Virus record (IMG/VR): IMGVR_UViG_3300032323_001214
Span: 1-64,000 of that record
DNA length: 64,000 nucleotides
Strand: one strand, 5' to 3'
The notes under the pieces were generated by a model. It was not told the origin of the DNA and made no database searches. It worked only from the letters and a program-made list of their open reading frames with translations. Shown here one piece after another: positions 1 through 3,393 of the stretch; the stretch's first letter is position 1, and each line of letters opens with the position of its first letter. The position numbers and the translations under genes were made by a program.

Positions 1-9
1 ACCCCCATA

Positions 10-84
10 TGGTCCACAGCCCCAGAATCGAACTGGGCTCTCTCGGCTTAAGAGGCCGGACTTCGCCAGCAAAGTTTGCTGTGG
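10..84 (-). tRNA. tRNA-Lys(CTT), atypical (A8, short D/anticodon junction)
   Basis: Minus strand CCACAGC/GCTGTGG acceptor, CGGC-CTCTTAA-GCCG anticodon arm, CCCAG-TTCGATT-CTGGG T arm, encoded ACCA end. Confidence 0.85.
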
Positions 85-145
85 ATGGATCGTAACTATT
101 GTCTTTTACGTGCCATCCAGGACCATACGGGGGTCTAGGATGACA

Positions 146-169
146 CTATCGTTTACCTGAACGTTTCAT
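146..169 (-). CDS. putative mini leader peptide MKRSGKR
   Basis: Strong SD AAAGGAGA 5 nt before ATG; own sigma70 promoter just upstream; TAG abuts a hairpin. Confidence 0.55.
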   Translation of the reverse strand: MKRSGKR

Positions 170-192
170 GTCGTTCTCCTTTAAAAAAATGT

Positions 193-221
193 ATTGTATC
201 AGACAAGTTAATTATTGTCAA
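193..221 (-). promoter_or_regulatory. sigma70-type promoter inside the tRNA array
   Basis: TTGACA (221-216), 17 nt spacer, TACAAT (198-193). Confidence 0.8.
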
Positions 222-224
222 ATT

Positions 225-299
225 TGGCGCCTCCTGATGGAATCGAACCACCATCCCGACGTTCGTAGCATCGTATCCTATCCATTGAACGAAGGAGGC
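225..299 (-). tRNA. tRNA-Arg(ACG)
   Basis: GCCTCCT/AGGAGGC acceptor, CGATG-CTACGAA-CGTCG anticodon arm, TTCGATT T loop, CCA. Confidence 0.93.
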
Positions 300-308
300 A
301 TAAATTGT

Positions 309-383
309 TGGTACTCAGTACGGGAATCGAACCCGTCTTTACAACTTGAAAGGCTGTCGTCCTAACCGATAGACGAACTGAGT
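309..383 (-). tRNA. tRNA-Glu(TTC)
   Basis: ACTCAGT/ACTGAGT acceptor, ACAGC-CTTTCAA-GTTGT anticodon arm, TTCGATT, CCA. Confidence 0.93.
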
Positions 384-387
384 ATAA

Positions 388-445
388 CAGGATGCGTTTT
401 GTTTTCACCATAAGAAAAGTTTTTAACTTTGCTGTTAGCATCCTA
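388..445 (-). ncRNA. small structured RNA, skipping-rope-like (closing stem plus ACAGCAA)
   Basis: AGGATGC...GCATCCT stem; ACAGCAA immediately 3' of the 5' arm; internal TTTTC-TTATGGT-GAAAA hairpin; family assignment from memory, not searched. Confidence 0.45.
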
Positions 446-449
446 AATC

Positions 450-524
450 TGGTGGAGACCGAGGGAGTTGAACCCTTCTAGTCATGATCCTTGCAAGGGA
501 TCACCGTAGCCCGCTACTGCCCCC
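450..524 (-). tRNA. tRNA-Ala(TGC), non-canonical D arm
   Basis: GGGGGC/GTCTCC acceptor with G3:U70, discriminator A and CCA; TGATCC-CTTGCAA-GGATCA anticodon arm; D arm reduced to GTAG-CGGG-CTAC. Confidence 0.75.
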
Positions 525-531
525 GTATTGT

Positions 532-607
532 TGGTCTCCGTACTAGGATTCGAACCTAGACCACTCGGCCCCAAACCGAGTACGCTGCCTGATAACGCTT
601 TACAGAG
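532..607 (-). tRNA. tRNA-Pro(TGG)
   Basis: CTCTGTA/TACGGAG acceptor, CTCGG-TTTGGGG-CCGAG anticodon arm, TTCGAAT, CCA. Confidence 0.92.
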
Positions 608-615
608 ATTAAGAT

Positions 616-692
616 TGGCGTCCACCGTCGGTATCACACCGCACTCCAAGTTAGCTGGTTAAGCTAACCTACAGATCTCCTGTTGAGTGGAC
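616..692 (-). ncRNA. tRNA-like RNA with CCA end, degenerate T arm, apparent AAC anticodon
   Basis: GTCCACT/GGTGGAC+GCCA acceptor, ACAG-GAGAT-CTGT arm, GTTAGC-TTAACCA-GCTAAC arm, CGGT-GTGAT-ACCG in place of the TTC loop. Confidence 0.6.
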
Positions 693-749
693 TGACTTAT
701 ACTTTGATCGTTGCCACCACAGCATTGACTACTCATATAAGCACTAACT

Positions 750-827
750 TGGCAGAGGTAACTGGATTCGAACCAGTGATCACGATTTCAAAGACCGTTG
801 CTTTAGGCCAAACTAAGCTATACCCCA
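750..827 (-). tRNA. tRNA-Gln(TTG)
   Basis: ACGGT-CTTTGAA-ATCGT anticodon arm, ACTGG-TTCGAAT-CCAGT T arm, weak 1:72 pair, CCA. Confidence 0.93.
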
Positions 828-836
828 ACAAATACT

Positions 837-911
837 TGGCGATGCGTGGGAGAATCGAACTCCCGTCTTCGGATAGACAATCCGAGATAATGACCATTAT
901 ATGAACGCACC
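837..911 (-). tRNA. tRNA-Asp(GTC)
   Basis: GGTGCGT/ACGCATC acceptor, TCGGA-TTGTCTA-TCCGA anticodon arm, TTCGATT, GCCA. Confidence 0.92.
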
Positions 912-917
912 TAATAC

Positions 918-995
918 TGGCTCCGTGATCTGGGATCGAACCAGACTCATTTCTGATTAACAGTCAGACGCCTACACCTTGCTTGCTCTCACGGA
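918..995 (-). tRNA. tRNA-Asn(GTT)
   Basis: TCCGTGA/TCACGGA acceptor, TCTGA-CTGTTAA-TCAGA anticodon arm, TTCGATC, GCCA. Confidence 0.92.
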
Positions 996-1056
996 ATAAA
1001 AAATATGTCACTACAGTATATCCGTCAGAGGGATATATACTGTTCATCTGTAGTAA

Positions 1057-1123
1057 GCATTCTAAAACATACTTCGGGGATTTCACTTAACGCCTCCCTA
1101 ACTCAAAGTATGTTTTAGAATGC
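1057..1123. repeat. 18-bp perfect inverted repeat (long RNA stem)
   Basis: GCATTCTAAAACATACTT (1057-1074) and AAGTATGTTTTAGAATGC (1106-1123). Confidence 0.9.
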
Positions 1124-1266
1124 CGTGTATTGCTACACGACATGATAGGGTTGATACCCTACCCAGTAGTCTTACTAATGTGTTATCGCCACACGTTCAT
1201 GTATACTGTCCGCCCATTCGATACATTTTACGCTGTATTCCGGCTCTCGTTGCCTATTCACGTTTC
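1124..1266 (-). ncRNA. multi-stem structured ncRNA of unknown family
   Basis: ACATGA/TCATGT closes a junction of three hairpins; flanking CGTGTA-GCAA-TACACG GNRA hairpin; no credible ORF. Confidence 0.5.
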
Positions 1267-1411
1267 TATCAATCCTCAAGTAAATATTTGTCTTTTACTC
1301 TTAGTTGATAGATTCTAGCACGGTCGATTTTATTTTGTATCAACTGTGCTACTTGCTCCTTAGTCAAAACATGATTGCTAAACCAATCTTGCTTTGTTTC
1401 AGAAGTCGTGT

Positions 1412-1440
1412 ATTCTATCTGTTTATCCATTTATTGTCAA
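1412..1440 (-). promoter_or_regulatory. sigma70-type promoter at the head of the RNA array
   Basis: TTGACA, 17 nt spacer, TAGAAT. Confidence 0.75.
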
Positions 1441-1467
1441 ATTTCCTTTTGTTGTTTTTTAACAACA

Positions 1468-1508
1468 CAAACAAAAACCCCTGAGACTTTTTAGTTTCCC
1501 AGGGGTTT
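1468..1508 (-). terminator. intrinsic terminator (attenuator) upstream of the tRNA array
   Basis: AAACCCCTG...CAGGGGTTT stem followed by TTGTTTG. Confidence 0.8.
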
Positions 1509-1531
1509 CATAAACTTGTTAGAGTGTTACT

Positions 1532-1705
1532 TTAAGCGTAACCTGCTCCTTCTATGAAACTCCCCGGAATTCTCGCATCATAATTAAACTCTGATCCGCG
1601 AATACTCGGTGTAGACATATTACCCACAAAGGCTAATACTGGTGTCAAAGAGGCTATCTGCCACTGACCCGTATGTTTTAGCGTTTGACAAGTAATGTTT
1701 TTCAT
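1532..1705 (-). CDS. putative 57-aa attenuator leader peptide
   Basis: Open frame MKNITCQTLKHTGQWQIASLTPVLAFVGNMSTPSIRGSEFNYDARIPGSFIEGAGYA; CTAAATA motif just upstream; codons 47-52 complementary to the terminator 5' arm. Confidence 0.65.
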   Translation of the reverse strand: MKNITCQTLKHTGQWQIASLTPVLAFVGNMSTPSIRGSEFNYDARIPGSFIEGAGYA

Positions 1706-1782
1706 AGTATGTTTATTTAGTCCTGGTTAAAAAATTTGTCTTTTAAAGGCGTTTTTATGTGCCTTTTCTCAATTCATACTGA

Positions 1783-1811
1783 AGTATAACAGATAACTGA
1801 ATTAGTGTCAA
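1783..1811 (-). promoter_or_regulatory. sigma70-type promoter
   Basis: TTGACA, 17 nt spacer, TATACT with upstream TG. Confidence 0.8.
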
Positions 1812-1882
1812 CACTTTTTTTCAACTATCTGCCCAAACTTCAAAAATTCTTTTTGCTCTGATTTCTCAGAACATGAGTGCAT

Positions 1883-1911
1883 AGTATAACACCACATGCA
1901 TTTAATGTCAA
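1883..1911 (-). promoter_or_regulatory. sigma70-type promoter, 100 bp upstream of the previous one
   Basis: TTGACA, 17 nt spacer, TATACT with upstream TG. Confidence 0.8.
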
Positions 1912-2549
1912 ACTTGTGGTTTCCCTAAAAAGTTTTCACGTGTATAGCAGATATCTGAATACTTTTGTATACTAGATTCTAATAAATCGGATAACTTTTT
2001 TTCATCAGTAATCTTGCCTCTGATAACTCCTAGAATTTTAAAATTATCTGGATCAAAGCTTGCGCCATGCGAACAAGACTGATTGTTAAAGCAGAAGGTA
2101 TTAGTTGTCTCCGGTAGTGTAATGTAACGCTTTTTGTCTCCGTAGTCAATAAAAAAGGACTTCTTATCTTGTGCTATCACAAAGCGGAATCTAAAGTCTA
2201 GCCTCGTATCATACATTAGTTTGTCTTGATGAGGCGGAACATATTGAATATTTGACCACAAACTAATTGACTCTACTTCTAATGGGAGGTAGGAATTCAG
2301 TATCTCAACATCATCCTTTAAAAAGTCTGACATATCAATAAATGTACCCACATGCATCAACATTTCGGGTGTAAAAGTAGGTCCTTTATAACATGTTAGT
2401 CCTTTCCAAAACACCGGAAGATTTGGGTCGGTTGGTTTTGATATATTGCTAGCATGTTCTTTGTACAGTTCAACGATACTGTCACGGTTCTTTAATGGTA
2501 AATTTGGAATGTTTAAAGGTGAGTACAAAACATTATCAAAGTTTATCAT
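1908..2549 (-). CDS. putative Fe(II)-dependent cupin/DSBH oxygenase
   Basis: PPHQD (HxD) and distal FCFNNQSCSHGA His. Confidence 0.55.
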   Translation of the reverse strand: MINFDNVLYSPLNIPNLPLKNRDSIVELYKEHASNISKPTDPNLPVFWKGLTCYKGPTFTPEMLMHVGTFIDMSDFLKDDVEILNSYLPLEVESISLWSNIQYVPPHQDKLMYDTRLDFRFRFVIAQDKKSFFIDYGDKKRYITLPETTNTFCFNNQSCSHGASFDPDNFKILGVIRGKITDEKKLSDLLESSIQKYSDICYTRENFLGKPQV

Positions 2550-2793
2550 GGCTATATCTTTCTTTTACAGACTCTTTGAACGAATTTACAAATGCATGAA
2601 TGATGGGTGCAAATCTTTTGTTTTGTTCAAGACTTACTTCTTCGCATAAATTCATACAATCATCTAATAATAGTTGAGCAAACGCTTCTATTTCTGTTTC
2701 TCTATTTACTAGTTCTGTGCTCAGGTCATTGACTACAGACCAGCTGGTGCTTGACATTGCTTGATCGGCTAATTTTTTTAAAGTATCGTTCAT
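2536..2793 (-). CDS. hypothetical protein
   Basis: 85-aa ORF tightly packed in the operon. Confidence 0.6.
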   Translation of the reverse strand: MNDTLKKLADQAMSSTSWSVVNDLSTELVNRETEIEAFAQLLLDDCMNLCEEVSLEQNKRFAPIIHAFVNSFKESVKERYSHDKL

Positions 2794-3393
2794 TTATCTA
2801 TCTATAATTATGTTTTGTGTTTTAAGGTGCTCTACTGCTTCATCCCATGTTAAATCATGTATACTTGTTCTTGCACTTATACACCATCTGGATTCATTGC
2901 CAACTGATAGAGAGTGCGGATAATCTGTTCTTACTAAAGTAGGTTCATTTGGCATTATTGAACATCTATCTATTTCTACCAAGTCTTTTATAGGCCAACT
3001 TAAAATTTTATTATTTCCAGGGACTAATTTAATATTTTTCTCACCCGGCGGAAGATCATACCATATCATCTCGCTTCCTGCACCCCCGAAGACCAAGTTA
3101 AAACCAAAATGTGTGCTTTGCGTAGGTGCCCCGACTTCACTGACCAAATCTACATGTGCTTCAGTGTCTACTAAATTAGCCTCTCTATAAAATACAACTG
3201 ATCTATTTATGGGTAATGCAACATCATTCATATATTTTACCCAATCAGTCTCAAAAATTTTATCTGCTTTAAATGACCATACCCCAACGTATCCGGAAAA
3301 TTGTCGGGGGTCAGGAAATTGCCAATCTTTTGATATTGCATTTTCTATATTTAAATTTAGTCTATACCAGCATTTTCTCATATTATTCCCCAT
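2794..3393 (-). CDS. putative Fe(II)/2OG-type DSBH oxygenase
   Basis: EAHVD...TLVRTDYPHS...RWCISAR pattern. Confidence 0.65.
   Translation of the reverse strand: MGNNMRKCWYRLNLNIENAISKDWQFPDPRQFSGYVGVWSFKADKIFETDWVKYMNDVALPINRSVVFYREANLVDTEAHVDLVSEVGAPTQSTHFGFNLVFGGAGSEMIWYDLPPGEKNIKLVPGNNKILSWPIKDLVEIDRCSIMPNEPTLVRTDYPHSLSVGNESRWCISARTSIHDLTWDEAVEHLKTQNIIIDR

Follow-up and report, generated by a model that had tools for sequence, protein, structure and literature searches.

[quoted passage not shown] We found this element in a window of 64,000 nucleotides (positions 1 to 64,000 of IMG/VR virus record IMGVR_UViG_3300032323_001214), and comparison with about 120 related loci from uncultured jumbo phages showed that amino-acid completeness, codon diversity and the overlapping RNA structures are selected features. 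As all of this evidence is computational and translation itself was not observed, control of termination by ribosome stalling, the tRNAs as the relevant output and the physiological trigger are inferred, and we hold the reading of the element as a ribosome-mediated transcription attenuator that senses the supply of any aminoacyl-tRNA with moderate confidence. The positions of all features are given in Table 1.

Table 1. Features of the leader region and the downstream unit (positions in the 64,000-nt window)
Position	Strand	Feature	Details
1883..1911	-	Promoter P1 (TTGACA-17-TATACT)	Upstream member of a tandem pair; 11/12 match
1783..1811	-	Promoter P2 (TTGACA-17-TATACT)	11/12 match; preceded by an A-rich stretch; predicted start site about 70 nt before the ATG
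1706..1776	-	5' UTR	Small hairpin whose sequence differs between relatives, a U-run, the near-invariant motif AACCAGGACTAAATA (1728-1714; contains AGGA 15 nt before the ATG), and ACT before the ATG
1532..1705	-	Leader ORF	57 codons plus TAA
1577..1705	-	Proposed sensing track	Codons 1-43; the twentieth amino acid (Asp43) is its last codon
1551..1567	-	Antiterminator 5' arm	Codons 47-52
1521..1549	-	Apical hairpin of the antiterminator	Stop codon (1534-1532) in its loop
1499..1514	-	Antiterminator 3' arm	Overlaps the terminator 5' arm
1469..1509	-	Intrinsic terminator	13-bp stem (1509-1497 with 1486-1474), 10-nt loop, U-tract 1477-1469
1412..1440	-	Promoter P3 (TTGACA-17-TAGAAT)	Downstream of the terminator
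1269..1430	-	Conserved 53-aa ORF	First gene reached by read-through
996..1268	-	Conserved structured RNA-like region	About 270 nt, between the 53-aa ORF and the first tRNA
10..995	-	tRNA array	8 genes called before the contig ends at window position 1

The leader ORF contains all 20 amino acids by codon 43, where Asp is the last new one, and uses 40 distinct sense codons. In the proteins of this phage, all 20 amino acids occur in 0.2% of 43-aa windows and 2.6% of 57-aa windows, and among 49 ATG-ORFs of 44-60 aa in the 64,000-nt window this is the only one with all 20. At least 40 distinct codons occur in 0.08% of 57-codon windows of the phage's genes, which average 28.9 +/- 3.8. The two antiterminator arms form 16 pairs with one bulged A, as described in the original prediction, and this pairing is the minimum-energy fold of the 114-nt fragment at -34 kcal/mol. 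Adding the terminator 5' arm to the upstream 90 nt gained -20.1 kcal/mol, while in 1000 dinucleotide shuffles the mean gain was -4.2 and the best was -13.8, and the best of 659 natural 90-mers from the window was -14.7. The terminator itself scored -19.2 kcal/mol (z = -4.1).

To determine whether completeness is selected, we compared the family members. Of 102 distinct peptides (44-59 aa, down to about 44% identity), 96 contain all 20 amino acids and the other six each lack exactly one, whereas the neighbouring small-protein family of the same size has 15-18 distinct amino acids. Simulation with AliSim on the family tree, using posterior site rates and an all-20 root, retained all 20 in a mean of 18 of 40 members with a maximum of 31 in 300 runs, while the observed value is 39 of 40. 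Moreover, single-copy residues relocate rather than disappear: single-copy H sits at position 11-12 in 92 members but at 6, 7 or 19 in six, single-copy W sits at 15-16 in 89 but at 24, 25, 27, 33 or 39 in six, C sits at 5, 6, 21 or 36, and V is lost in one member (L053) and present at another site in another (L056). Extra W or C copies in the C-terminal part never replace the upstream copy. The twentieth amino acid lies 3-5 codons before the first codon of the antiterminator arm in all 39 members of the first set and 2-6 codons before it in a divergent short subfamily, and it is never in or after the arm. At the codon level, 35-43 distinct codons are used per ORF, and distinct codons and decoding groups exceed the expectation for the given amino-acid sequence in 68 of 68 ORFs, with mean z of 2.1-2.8. 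The ORF is intact in 58 of 58 loci found through the terminator alone, and median dN/dS is 0.38 with dS about 1.

The switch is conserved as well, and homologues retain both the pairing and the codon diversity. Before the terminator 3' arm exists, 9-13 of the 13 terminator 5'-arm bases pair with the 3' end of the ORF in 41 of 41 distinct sequences folded; the antiterminator scores -18 to -35 kcal/mol and the terminator -16 to -23, and the full-length minimum-energy fold splits about evenly between the two states. In the terminator, 99.2% of cells are paired and 2 pairs show compensatory change, with C-G to A-U in 3 sequences. The upper antiterminator helices carry 5 pairs with double changes, whereas the basal helix is conserved but shows no double compensatory change within the main subfamily. 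C-terminal variants carry a different sequence that still forms a hairpin at the apical position, and the short subfamily, which uses different arm sequences, replaces the middle helix with other complementary pairs and puts the stop codon inside it. When a ribosome footprint was masked, the antiterminator was kept for A-site codons 2-43 and lost from codon 45 onward, which places the switch point at A-site codon 43-45 in agreement with the original prediction of about codon 43. Minimum-energy folds flip at a few mid-ORF footprint positions, and a stricter automated test of whether the twentieth amino acid falls inside the sensing window held in only 50 of 63 members, the failures coming from isolated fold flips; the geometric criterion of codon distance to the arm is more robust. 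Pairing of the 5' UTR motif CCAGG with CCTGG of the terminator was rejected, as it is only 5 bp and variants are not compensated. Pairing of the invariant AGT ATT CGC codons with the antiterminator arm, suggested by RNAalifold, is weak and absent where the partner differs, but remains possible. A six-codon mini-ORF inside the terminator is not conserved, because variants lack the ATG.

In the surrounding context, a promoter whose -10 ends 75-80 nt before the ATG is present in 33 of the 35 loci checked, and 66-67 nt before it in the other two, and a second promoter about 100 nt further upstream is present in most related loci. Thus, the suggestion in the original prediction that a weak Shine–Dalgarno sequence might imply a short or leaderless late transcript is wrong: conserved tandem promoters give a leader of roughly 70 nt, and only about a third of this phage's genes have a Shine–Dalgarno sequence anyway. 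The original prediction also placed the ORF directly upstream of the tRNA/ncRNA array, but the 53-aa ORF and the structured RNA-like region lie between it and the tRNAs, and the first gene reached by read-through is not a tRNA. A same-strand tRNA array follows in 29 of 31 scanned loci, and the other two end about 0.4-0.5 kb after the ORF; the arrays begin 0.3-1.3 kb downstream, none lie upstream, and relatives carry up to 37 tRNAs for 19 amino acids. The 53-aa ORF gave tblastn hits at the same position in 37 loci, and it is predicted as two helices (AlphaFold model, pLDDT 78), too simple for a meaningful fold search. The structured RNA-like region shows conserved hairpins with a variable insert in the 6 relatives that carry both anchor motifs. 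The promoter P3, already noted in the original prediction, was confirmed, and it is present at 10 or more of 12 matches in 32 of 43 distinct downstream sequences and absent in 11.

Searches for known counterparts were negative. Megablast of positions 1-2600 and tblastn of the leader peptide, of a short-subfamily peptide and of the neighbouring 213-aa protein against GenBank phages gave no homologue, and a scan of species-representative genomes gave only a chance 13-residue match; homologues of the leader peptide are all unnamed metagenomic proteins, and no relative is cultured. Pfam, PHROGs, Rfam and PDB gave nothing for the leader or the 53-aa ORF, and in a covariance-model search of positions 1-3000 at E <= 1 only tRNAs and weak chance matches were found. 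In the tRNA region of phage T5, 2 of 61 short ORFs have all 20 amino acids, which is about the chance rate; one looks like a HicB-type antitoxin domain and the other lies on the strand opposite the annotated genes, and we rejected both as analogues. In four full-text searches we found no published description of an all-amino-acid leader or of an attenuator before phage tRNA arrays.

Based on these data, we propose that transcription starts at P1 and P2, and that a ribosome loads on the leader and follows RNA polymerase. If it crosses codons 1-43 without delay, it would be sitting on codons 45-57 when the polymerase makes the terminator, so that the antiterminator 5' arm is covered or unwound, the terminator hairpin forms and the transcript ends at the U-tract. 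If the ribosome stalls at any earlier codon because that aminoacyl-tRNA is short, or never loads, the long antiterminator hairpin would form first and sequester the 5' arm of the terminator, and polymerase would read on into the 53-aa ORF, the structured RNA and the tRNA array. The element, which presents all 20 amino acids and about 33-36 of some 45 decoding groups, would therefore report the supply of every charged tRNA and raise expression of the phage's near-complete tRNA set, and of the small protein, when supply fails. Candidate triggers are host tRNA cleavage, host shut-off, codon mismatch, or feedback from the phage's own tRNAs. A leader of 44-59 codons needs sustained coupling of ribosome and polymerase, and we identified no pause element. 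Moreover, the peptide is more conserved than a pure codon track needs, with motifs such as KHTG-W, PSIR and GSFIEG and many invariant third positions, and the peptide or the RNA may have a further role.

Alternative explanations were considered less likely. The attenuator may be real while its regulated output is the conserved 53-aa protein, perhaps together with the structured RNA, so that a small effector is switched on when translation falters and the tRNAs are made mainly from P3. The 53-aa ORF follows the terminator at a fixed distance in 37 loci, and its start codon lies between the -35 and -10 of P3, so P3 transcripts cannot encode it and only read-through transcripts can; since P3 follows the terminator in most distinct loci, the tRNAs may be transcribed regardless, and read-through may matter mainly for this ORF. 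However, in the 11 distinct loci without P3 the whole downstream unit depends on read-through, the match between an all-20 leader and a tRNA set covering 19-20 amino acids is hard to explain if tRNAs are not an output, and the small protein has no recognisable function. We regard this possibility as unlikely, although the two outputs are not mutually exclusive.

Still more doubtful is an ordinary small phage protein gene with its own promoter and terminator, in which completeness and the pairing are by-products of a conserved peptide sequence. Its conserved motifs, the dN/dS and the absence of frame-breaking indels would fit this view, and small early genes with their own terminators are probably common in large phages, but the relocation of single-copy W, H, C and V with completeness kept, a simulation that does not reproduce the observed retention even when conditioned on conserved sites, the excess codon diversity, non-coding flanks that are more conserved than the ORF, a stop codon that is always inside the antiterminator hairpin even when the hairpin sequence differs, and the lack of any family match argue against it. 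A structured regulatory or stable RNA of about 300 nt, in which the reading frame is tolerated rather than used, seems least likely. Nucleotide conservation is high, including the 5' UTR motif, the terminator loop and many third codon positions, and the whole transcript folds with z = -5.0. Nevertheless, the ORF is intact in all loci found independently of it, third positions vary more than first and second, an RNA-only function cannot explain selection for all 20 amino acids, and no Rfam family matches.

A further reading, which is possible but which we hold only tentatively, is that of a natural pan-tRNA sensor, with which a jumbo phage measures in real time whether the infected cell can still decode all codons and switches on its own tRNAs, plus a small protein and a structured RNA, when any one tRNA fails, for instance after host anticodon-nuclease or other tRNA-depleting defences. 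That host anticodon-nuclease defence is the trigger, as suggested in the original prediction, remains speculation. Such a sensor would be the first attenuator that senses all amino acids at once and the first described regulatory logic for phage tRNA arrays, whose function has been debated for decades between codon compensation, host shut-off and escape from tRNA-cleaving defences (PMC10264068). If read-through responds to loss of any tRNA, the view that these arrays are an inducible back-up translation kit would be directly supported. The element is compact, about 300 nt, uses standard sigma-70 and intrinsic-terminator parts, and could serve as a biosensor of aminoacyl-tRNA supply.

Leader-peptide attenuators of amino-acid biosynthetic operons (trpL, hisL, leuL, pheL, thrL and ilvL of enterobacteria) likewise combine a short translated leader, an intrinsic terminator, and an antiterminator that shares a strand with the terminator and overlaps the end of the leader, and the position of the ribosome decides which hairpin forms, a stalled ribosome giving read-through. 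Known leaders of this type appear to read one to three amino acids through runs of their codons, and the thr and ilv leaders seem already to respond to two or three. Here there is no run of cognate codons; instead every amino acid is present, most once to four times, in a leader of 44-59 codons against 14-32, and the genes downstream are tRNAs and a small protein of a phage, not biosynthetic enzymes. Whether there is an anti-antiterminator or pause hairpin is unclear: a pairing of the start-codon region with part of the antiterminator arm is possible in 39 of 41 sequences, but without covariation, and is absent in the two short-subfamily rows. Without a clear hairpin of this kind, an untranslated leader is predicted to read through rather than super-attenuate. 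In leader ORFs that sense general translation stress (toiL of topAI-yjhQ, PMC12121999; the msrD leader, PMC10314930; the mef/mel leader, PMC4335068), a short upstream ORF also reports ribosome stalling and thereby releases downstream expression, and toiL responds to stalling at several positions. Those leaders respond to ribosome-targeting antibiotics, and appear to depend on stalling at specific codons (toiL), on antibiotic binding to the ribosome (msrD) or on attenuation (mef/mel), and some are known to involve Rho; none is reported to be selected for amino-acid completeness or to control tRNA genes. The hypothesis that phage tRNA arrays counter host tRNA depletion (PMC10264068) supplies a rationale for raising phage tRNA expression when host tRNAs are depleted, but that work concerns the sequences of phage tRNAs and describes no regulatory element upstream of the arrays. 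T-box riboswitches couple the charging state of tRNA to read-through of a terminator by way of an antiterminator, but they bind one specific uncharged tRNA directly and have no leader ORF, and no T-box match was found here. Finally, the pyrBI and pyrE attenuators read the distance between the ribosome and RNA polymerase on a longer leader, but with the opposite logic, as there a closely following ribosome blocks the terminator, whereas here it is predicted to permit it.

The element lies near the end of a 249.6-kb contig of an uncultured phage, and the contig terminates inside a tRNA array. The portal protein of this phage is about 50% identical to those of jumbo myoviruses such as Agrobacterium phage Atu_ph07, Sinorhizobium phage Phosso and Pseudomonas phage PA5oct, whereas no GenBank phage shares DNA with this region. 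The order of features along the minus strand, together with the other sites discussed below, is summarized in the following table.

Features of the leader region and of the related loci (positions refer to the window unless a locus is named)
Feature	Coordinates	Strand	Description
First promoter	1911-1883	-	sigma-70, 11-of-12 match
Second promoter	1811-1783	-	sigma-70, 11-of-12 match
5' UTR		-	about 70 nt
5' UTR motif	1714-1728	-	AACCAGGACTAAATA
Leader ORF	1705-1532	-	57 codons
Start-codon region and its complement	1701-1708 with 1550-1557	-	CUAUGAAA with UUUCAUAG
Antiterminator pairing	1567-1551 with 1514-1499		3' end of the leader ORF with a segment that overlaps the terminator 5' arm
Terminator	1509-1469	-	13-bp hairpin with a U-tract
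Small hairpin	1450-1468	-	GTTGTT-AAAAAA-CAAC type
Third promoter (P3)	1440-1412	-
53-aa ORF	1430-1269	-
Structured non-coding region	996-1268	-	about 270 nt
tRNA genes	995-10	-	eight genes
Gaps in the tRNA array	85-224 and 608-749	-	about 140 nt each; the first contains an 11-of-12 sigma-70 promoter match (221-193)
tRNA with anticodon UUA	L011:5343-5415		in the tRNA array of one relative (L011)
Non-coding region in the 353-kb relative (L064)	L064:10446-10843		counterpart of 996-1268
Radical-SAM gene cluster in the 353-kb relative	L064:523-8213	both	upstream of the leader

Every feature listed in the original prediction was found to be present. The leader ORF holds all 20 amino acids by codon 43 and uses 40 distinct codons, while in this phage's own proteins only 0.2% of 43-residue windows and 2.6% of 57-residue windows hold all 20, and only 0.08% of 57-codon windows reach 40 distinct codons. 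The pairing proposed between the 3' end of the ORF and the segment overlapping the terminator 5' arm is the minimum-energy fold of the local 114 nt. Adding the 5' arm of the terminator to the upstream 90 nt lowers the energy by 20.1 kcal/mol, compared with 13.8 for the best of 1000 dinucleotide shuffles and 14.7 for the best of 659 natural 90-mers. For a single ORF such a composition is unusual but not decisive, and the decisive evidence comes from relatives.

Relatives were collected in four ways. A protein search gave 22 unnamed metagenomic homologues, pattern scans gave 61 loci in viral and metagenome collections, and a profile search of 1.8 billion representative proteins gave 15 further clusters. 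Moreover, a search with the 28-nt terminator sequence alone, which ignores the ORF, gave 59 loci, and in this unbiased set 58 of 58 loci with enough upstream DNA carry an intact ORF ending within 60 nt of the terminator. Together these searches give 102 distinct peptides of 44-59 residues, with identity to the window down to about 44%, of which 96 contain all 20 amino acids and the remaining six each lack exactly one. The set includes a divergent short subfamily of 44-48 residues, in which 19 of 24 distinct members hold all 20 amino acids and the other five lack one each, against a background at that length of about 0.3-0.5%. In contrast, the neighbouring 53-aa protein family, of the same size and from the same loci, has 15-18 distinct amino acids and never 20.

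To distinguish whether completeness is selected or merely inherited, we examined the residues Cys, His, Trp, Val and Asp, which are usually present once. Where the usual site has changed, the residue turns up elsewhere. A single-copy His is at position 11-12 in 92 members but at 6, 7 or 19 in six others, a single-copy Trp is at 15-16 in 89 members but at 24, 25, 27, 33 or 39 in six others, and Cys is at 5, 6, 21 or 36. In one lineage Val is lost from one locus (L053, which has 19 amino acids) and is present at a different site in its close relative (L056). Evolution was then simulated on the family tree under LG+F+G4, using the real gap pattern, posterior mean site rates and an all-20 root, and this null is conservative because it keeps the observed slow sites slow. 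On average 18 of 40 members retained all 20 amino acids, with a maximum of 31 in 300 runs, while the observed value is 39 of 40.

In all 39 complete members of the first set, the twentieth distinct amino acid appears 3-5 codons before the first codon of the antiterminator arm, and in the short subfamily it appears 2-6 codons before, but it is never in or after the arm. When a second Trp or Cys occurs in the C-terminal part, the upstream copy is still there. Thus, the constraint applies to the part of the ORF that lies ahead of the structure, not to the peptide as a whole. At the codon level, family members use 35-43 distinct codons, with 35-36 in the 44-codon members L060 and L062. With synonymous codons drawn for each peptide from this phage's own usage as a null, the numbers of distinct codons and of decoding groups (a proxy for tRNA species) are above expectation in 68 of 68 distinct ORFs, with mean z of 2.1-2.8, and on average 33-34 of about 45 groups are covered. 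Rare codons are prominent, among them ACG, CGC, GCG, GGG and GTG. Some fourfold sites are saturated with synonymous change while other codons are invariant at all three positions, which fits selection at the codon or RNA level.

To examine the switch itself, each of 41 distinct sequences was folded up to the end of the terminator 5' arm, and in every one, 9-13 of the 13 bases of this arm pair with the 3' end of the ORF. The antiterminator scores -18 to -35 kcal/mol and the terminator alone -16 to -23. With the whole terminator present, the minimum-energy fold is the terminator in about half the sequences and the antiterminator in the rest, a balance that is expected of a switch decided by kinetics. 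The terminator is 99% paired, with C-G to A-U compensation, whereas the basal antiterminator helix is 94% paired but too conserved to show double changes, and the upper helices show five pairs with compensatory change. C-terminal variants of the peptide carry entirely different sequences there that still form a hairpin, and the short subfamily builds the antiterminator from a CCCGGGG/CCCCUGGG base plus a middle helix that differs between members while staying complementary. The stop codon always sits inside this structure, in the apical loop in the long form and in the middle helix in the short form. Every leader ORF seen ends in UAA, and ARAGORN calls a tRNA with anticodon UUA, which would read this stop codon, inside the tRNA array of L011.

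The start-codon region is complementary to part of the antiterminator 5' arm, and this pairing appears in the full-length minimum-energy fold and in the RNAalifold consensus for 39 of 41 sequences, though without covariation; it could sequester the start codon in the terminated RNA, or it could be coincidence. The 5' UTR motif is nearly invariant across both subfamilies, although the sequence just upstream varies, and part of it resembles the 5' arm and loop of the terminator (CCTGGGAAACTAAAAA). The small hairpin directly after the terminator U-tract and before P3 is kept in many relatives with slightly different sequences.

We next masked a 30-nt ribosome footprint along the window's leader. 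The antiterminator survives for A-site codons 2-43, weakens at 44 and is lost from 45 to 57. At a few mid-ORF positions the minimum-energy fold flips to a competing structure, and at the stop codon the two arms are formally free, although they would have to close around the ribosome. The boundary coincides with Asp43, the last new amino acid.

A consensus promoter lies with its -10 element 75-80 nt before the ATG in 33 of the 35 loci examined, and 66-67 nt in the other two, and most loci have a second promoter about 100 nt further up. The weak Shine-Dalgarno sequence raised as a caveat in the original prediction means little here, since most genes of this phage lack one; only about a third of the 43 long ORFs in the window have a recognisable motif, which lies 7-11 nt from the ATG where present, suggesting a host that often initiates translation without one. 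A same-strand tRNA array begins 0.3-1.3 kb after the ORF in 29 of the 31 loci scanned, the other two end about 0.4-0.5 kb after the ORF, and no tRNA lies in the 3 kb upstream. A 353-kb relative (L064) has 37 tRNAs for 19 amino acids there, its upstream neighbour is transcribed divergently, and the region upstream of its leader is a cluster of at least five radical-SAM genes. In the window, neither of the two gaps in the tRNA array holds a called tRNA, and the promoter match in the first suggests internal promoters within the array.

The first gene after the terminator, in nearly all relatives, is the conserved 53-aa ORF, whose core reads roughly DW-x3-H-x-L-S/T-x-E-Q ... L-I-x2-K-x2-R. Its start codon lies between the -35 and -10 hexamers of P3, so the promoter and the N-terminal codons constrain each other, and it is inferred from these positions that transcripts from P3 cannot encode the ORF and only read-through transcripts can. 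P3 is present in 32 of 43 distinct downstream sequences, and in the other 11 the 53-aa ORF follows the U-tract with no promoter between. The protein has no recognisable family and is predicted as two helices. It is followed, before the first tRNA, by a conserved multi-hairpin non-coding region without an Rfam match, in which one long hairpin carries a variable-length insert at its tip; in two relatives, L045 and L046, this region follows P3 directly.

The simplest account of all these data is a leader-peptide attenuator whose regulatory codons are all codons. In this account, a ribosome that keeps pace through the first ~43 codons unwinds the antiterminator and allows termination, while a ribosome delayed at any codon, or absent, lets the antiterminator form and the polymerase continue. 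The main reservation is that all the evidence is comparative: it consists of the anatomy of the element, its conservation across two subfamilies, selection for amino-acid and codon completeness ahead of the arm, covariation in the terminator and in the upper antiterminator, and synteny with tRNA arrays, and it is only inferred that termination really responds to stalling. It is likewise an inference that the tRNAs, rather than or as well as the 53-aa protein, are the biologically important output. Host tRNA-cleaving defences are a plausible trigger (PMC10264068), although nothing in our data addresses this, and feedback from the phage's own tRNAs would fit equally well.

We found no published description of such an element and no homologue in cultured phages. 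It is not a T-box. In its inferred response to stalls at many positions it resembles general stalling sensors such as toiL (PMC12121999), which are not reported to be selected for amino-acid completeness or to control tRNA genes. The element would work like the trp, his, leu, thr and ilv attenuators, and although no clear pause or anti-antiterminator hairpin was seen in our folding analyses, it otherwise fits their structural criteria except the defining run of cognate codons.
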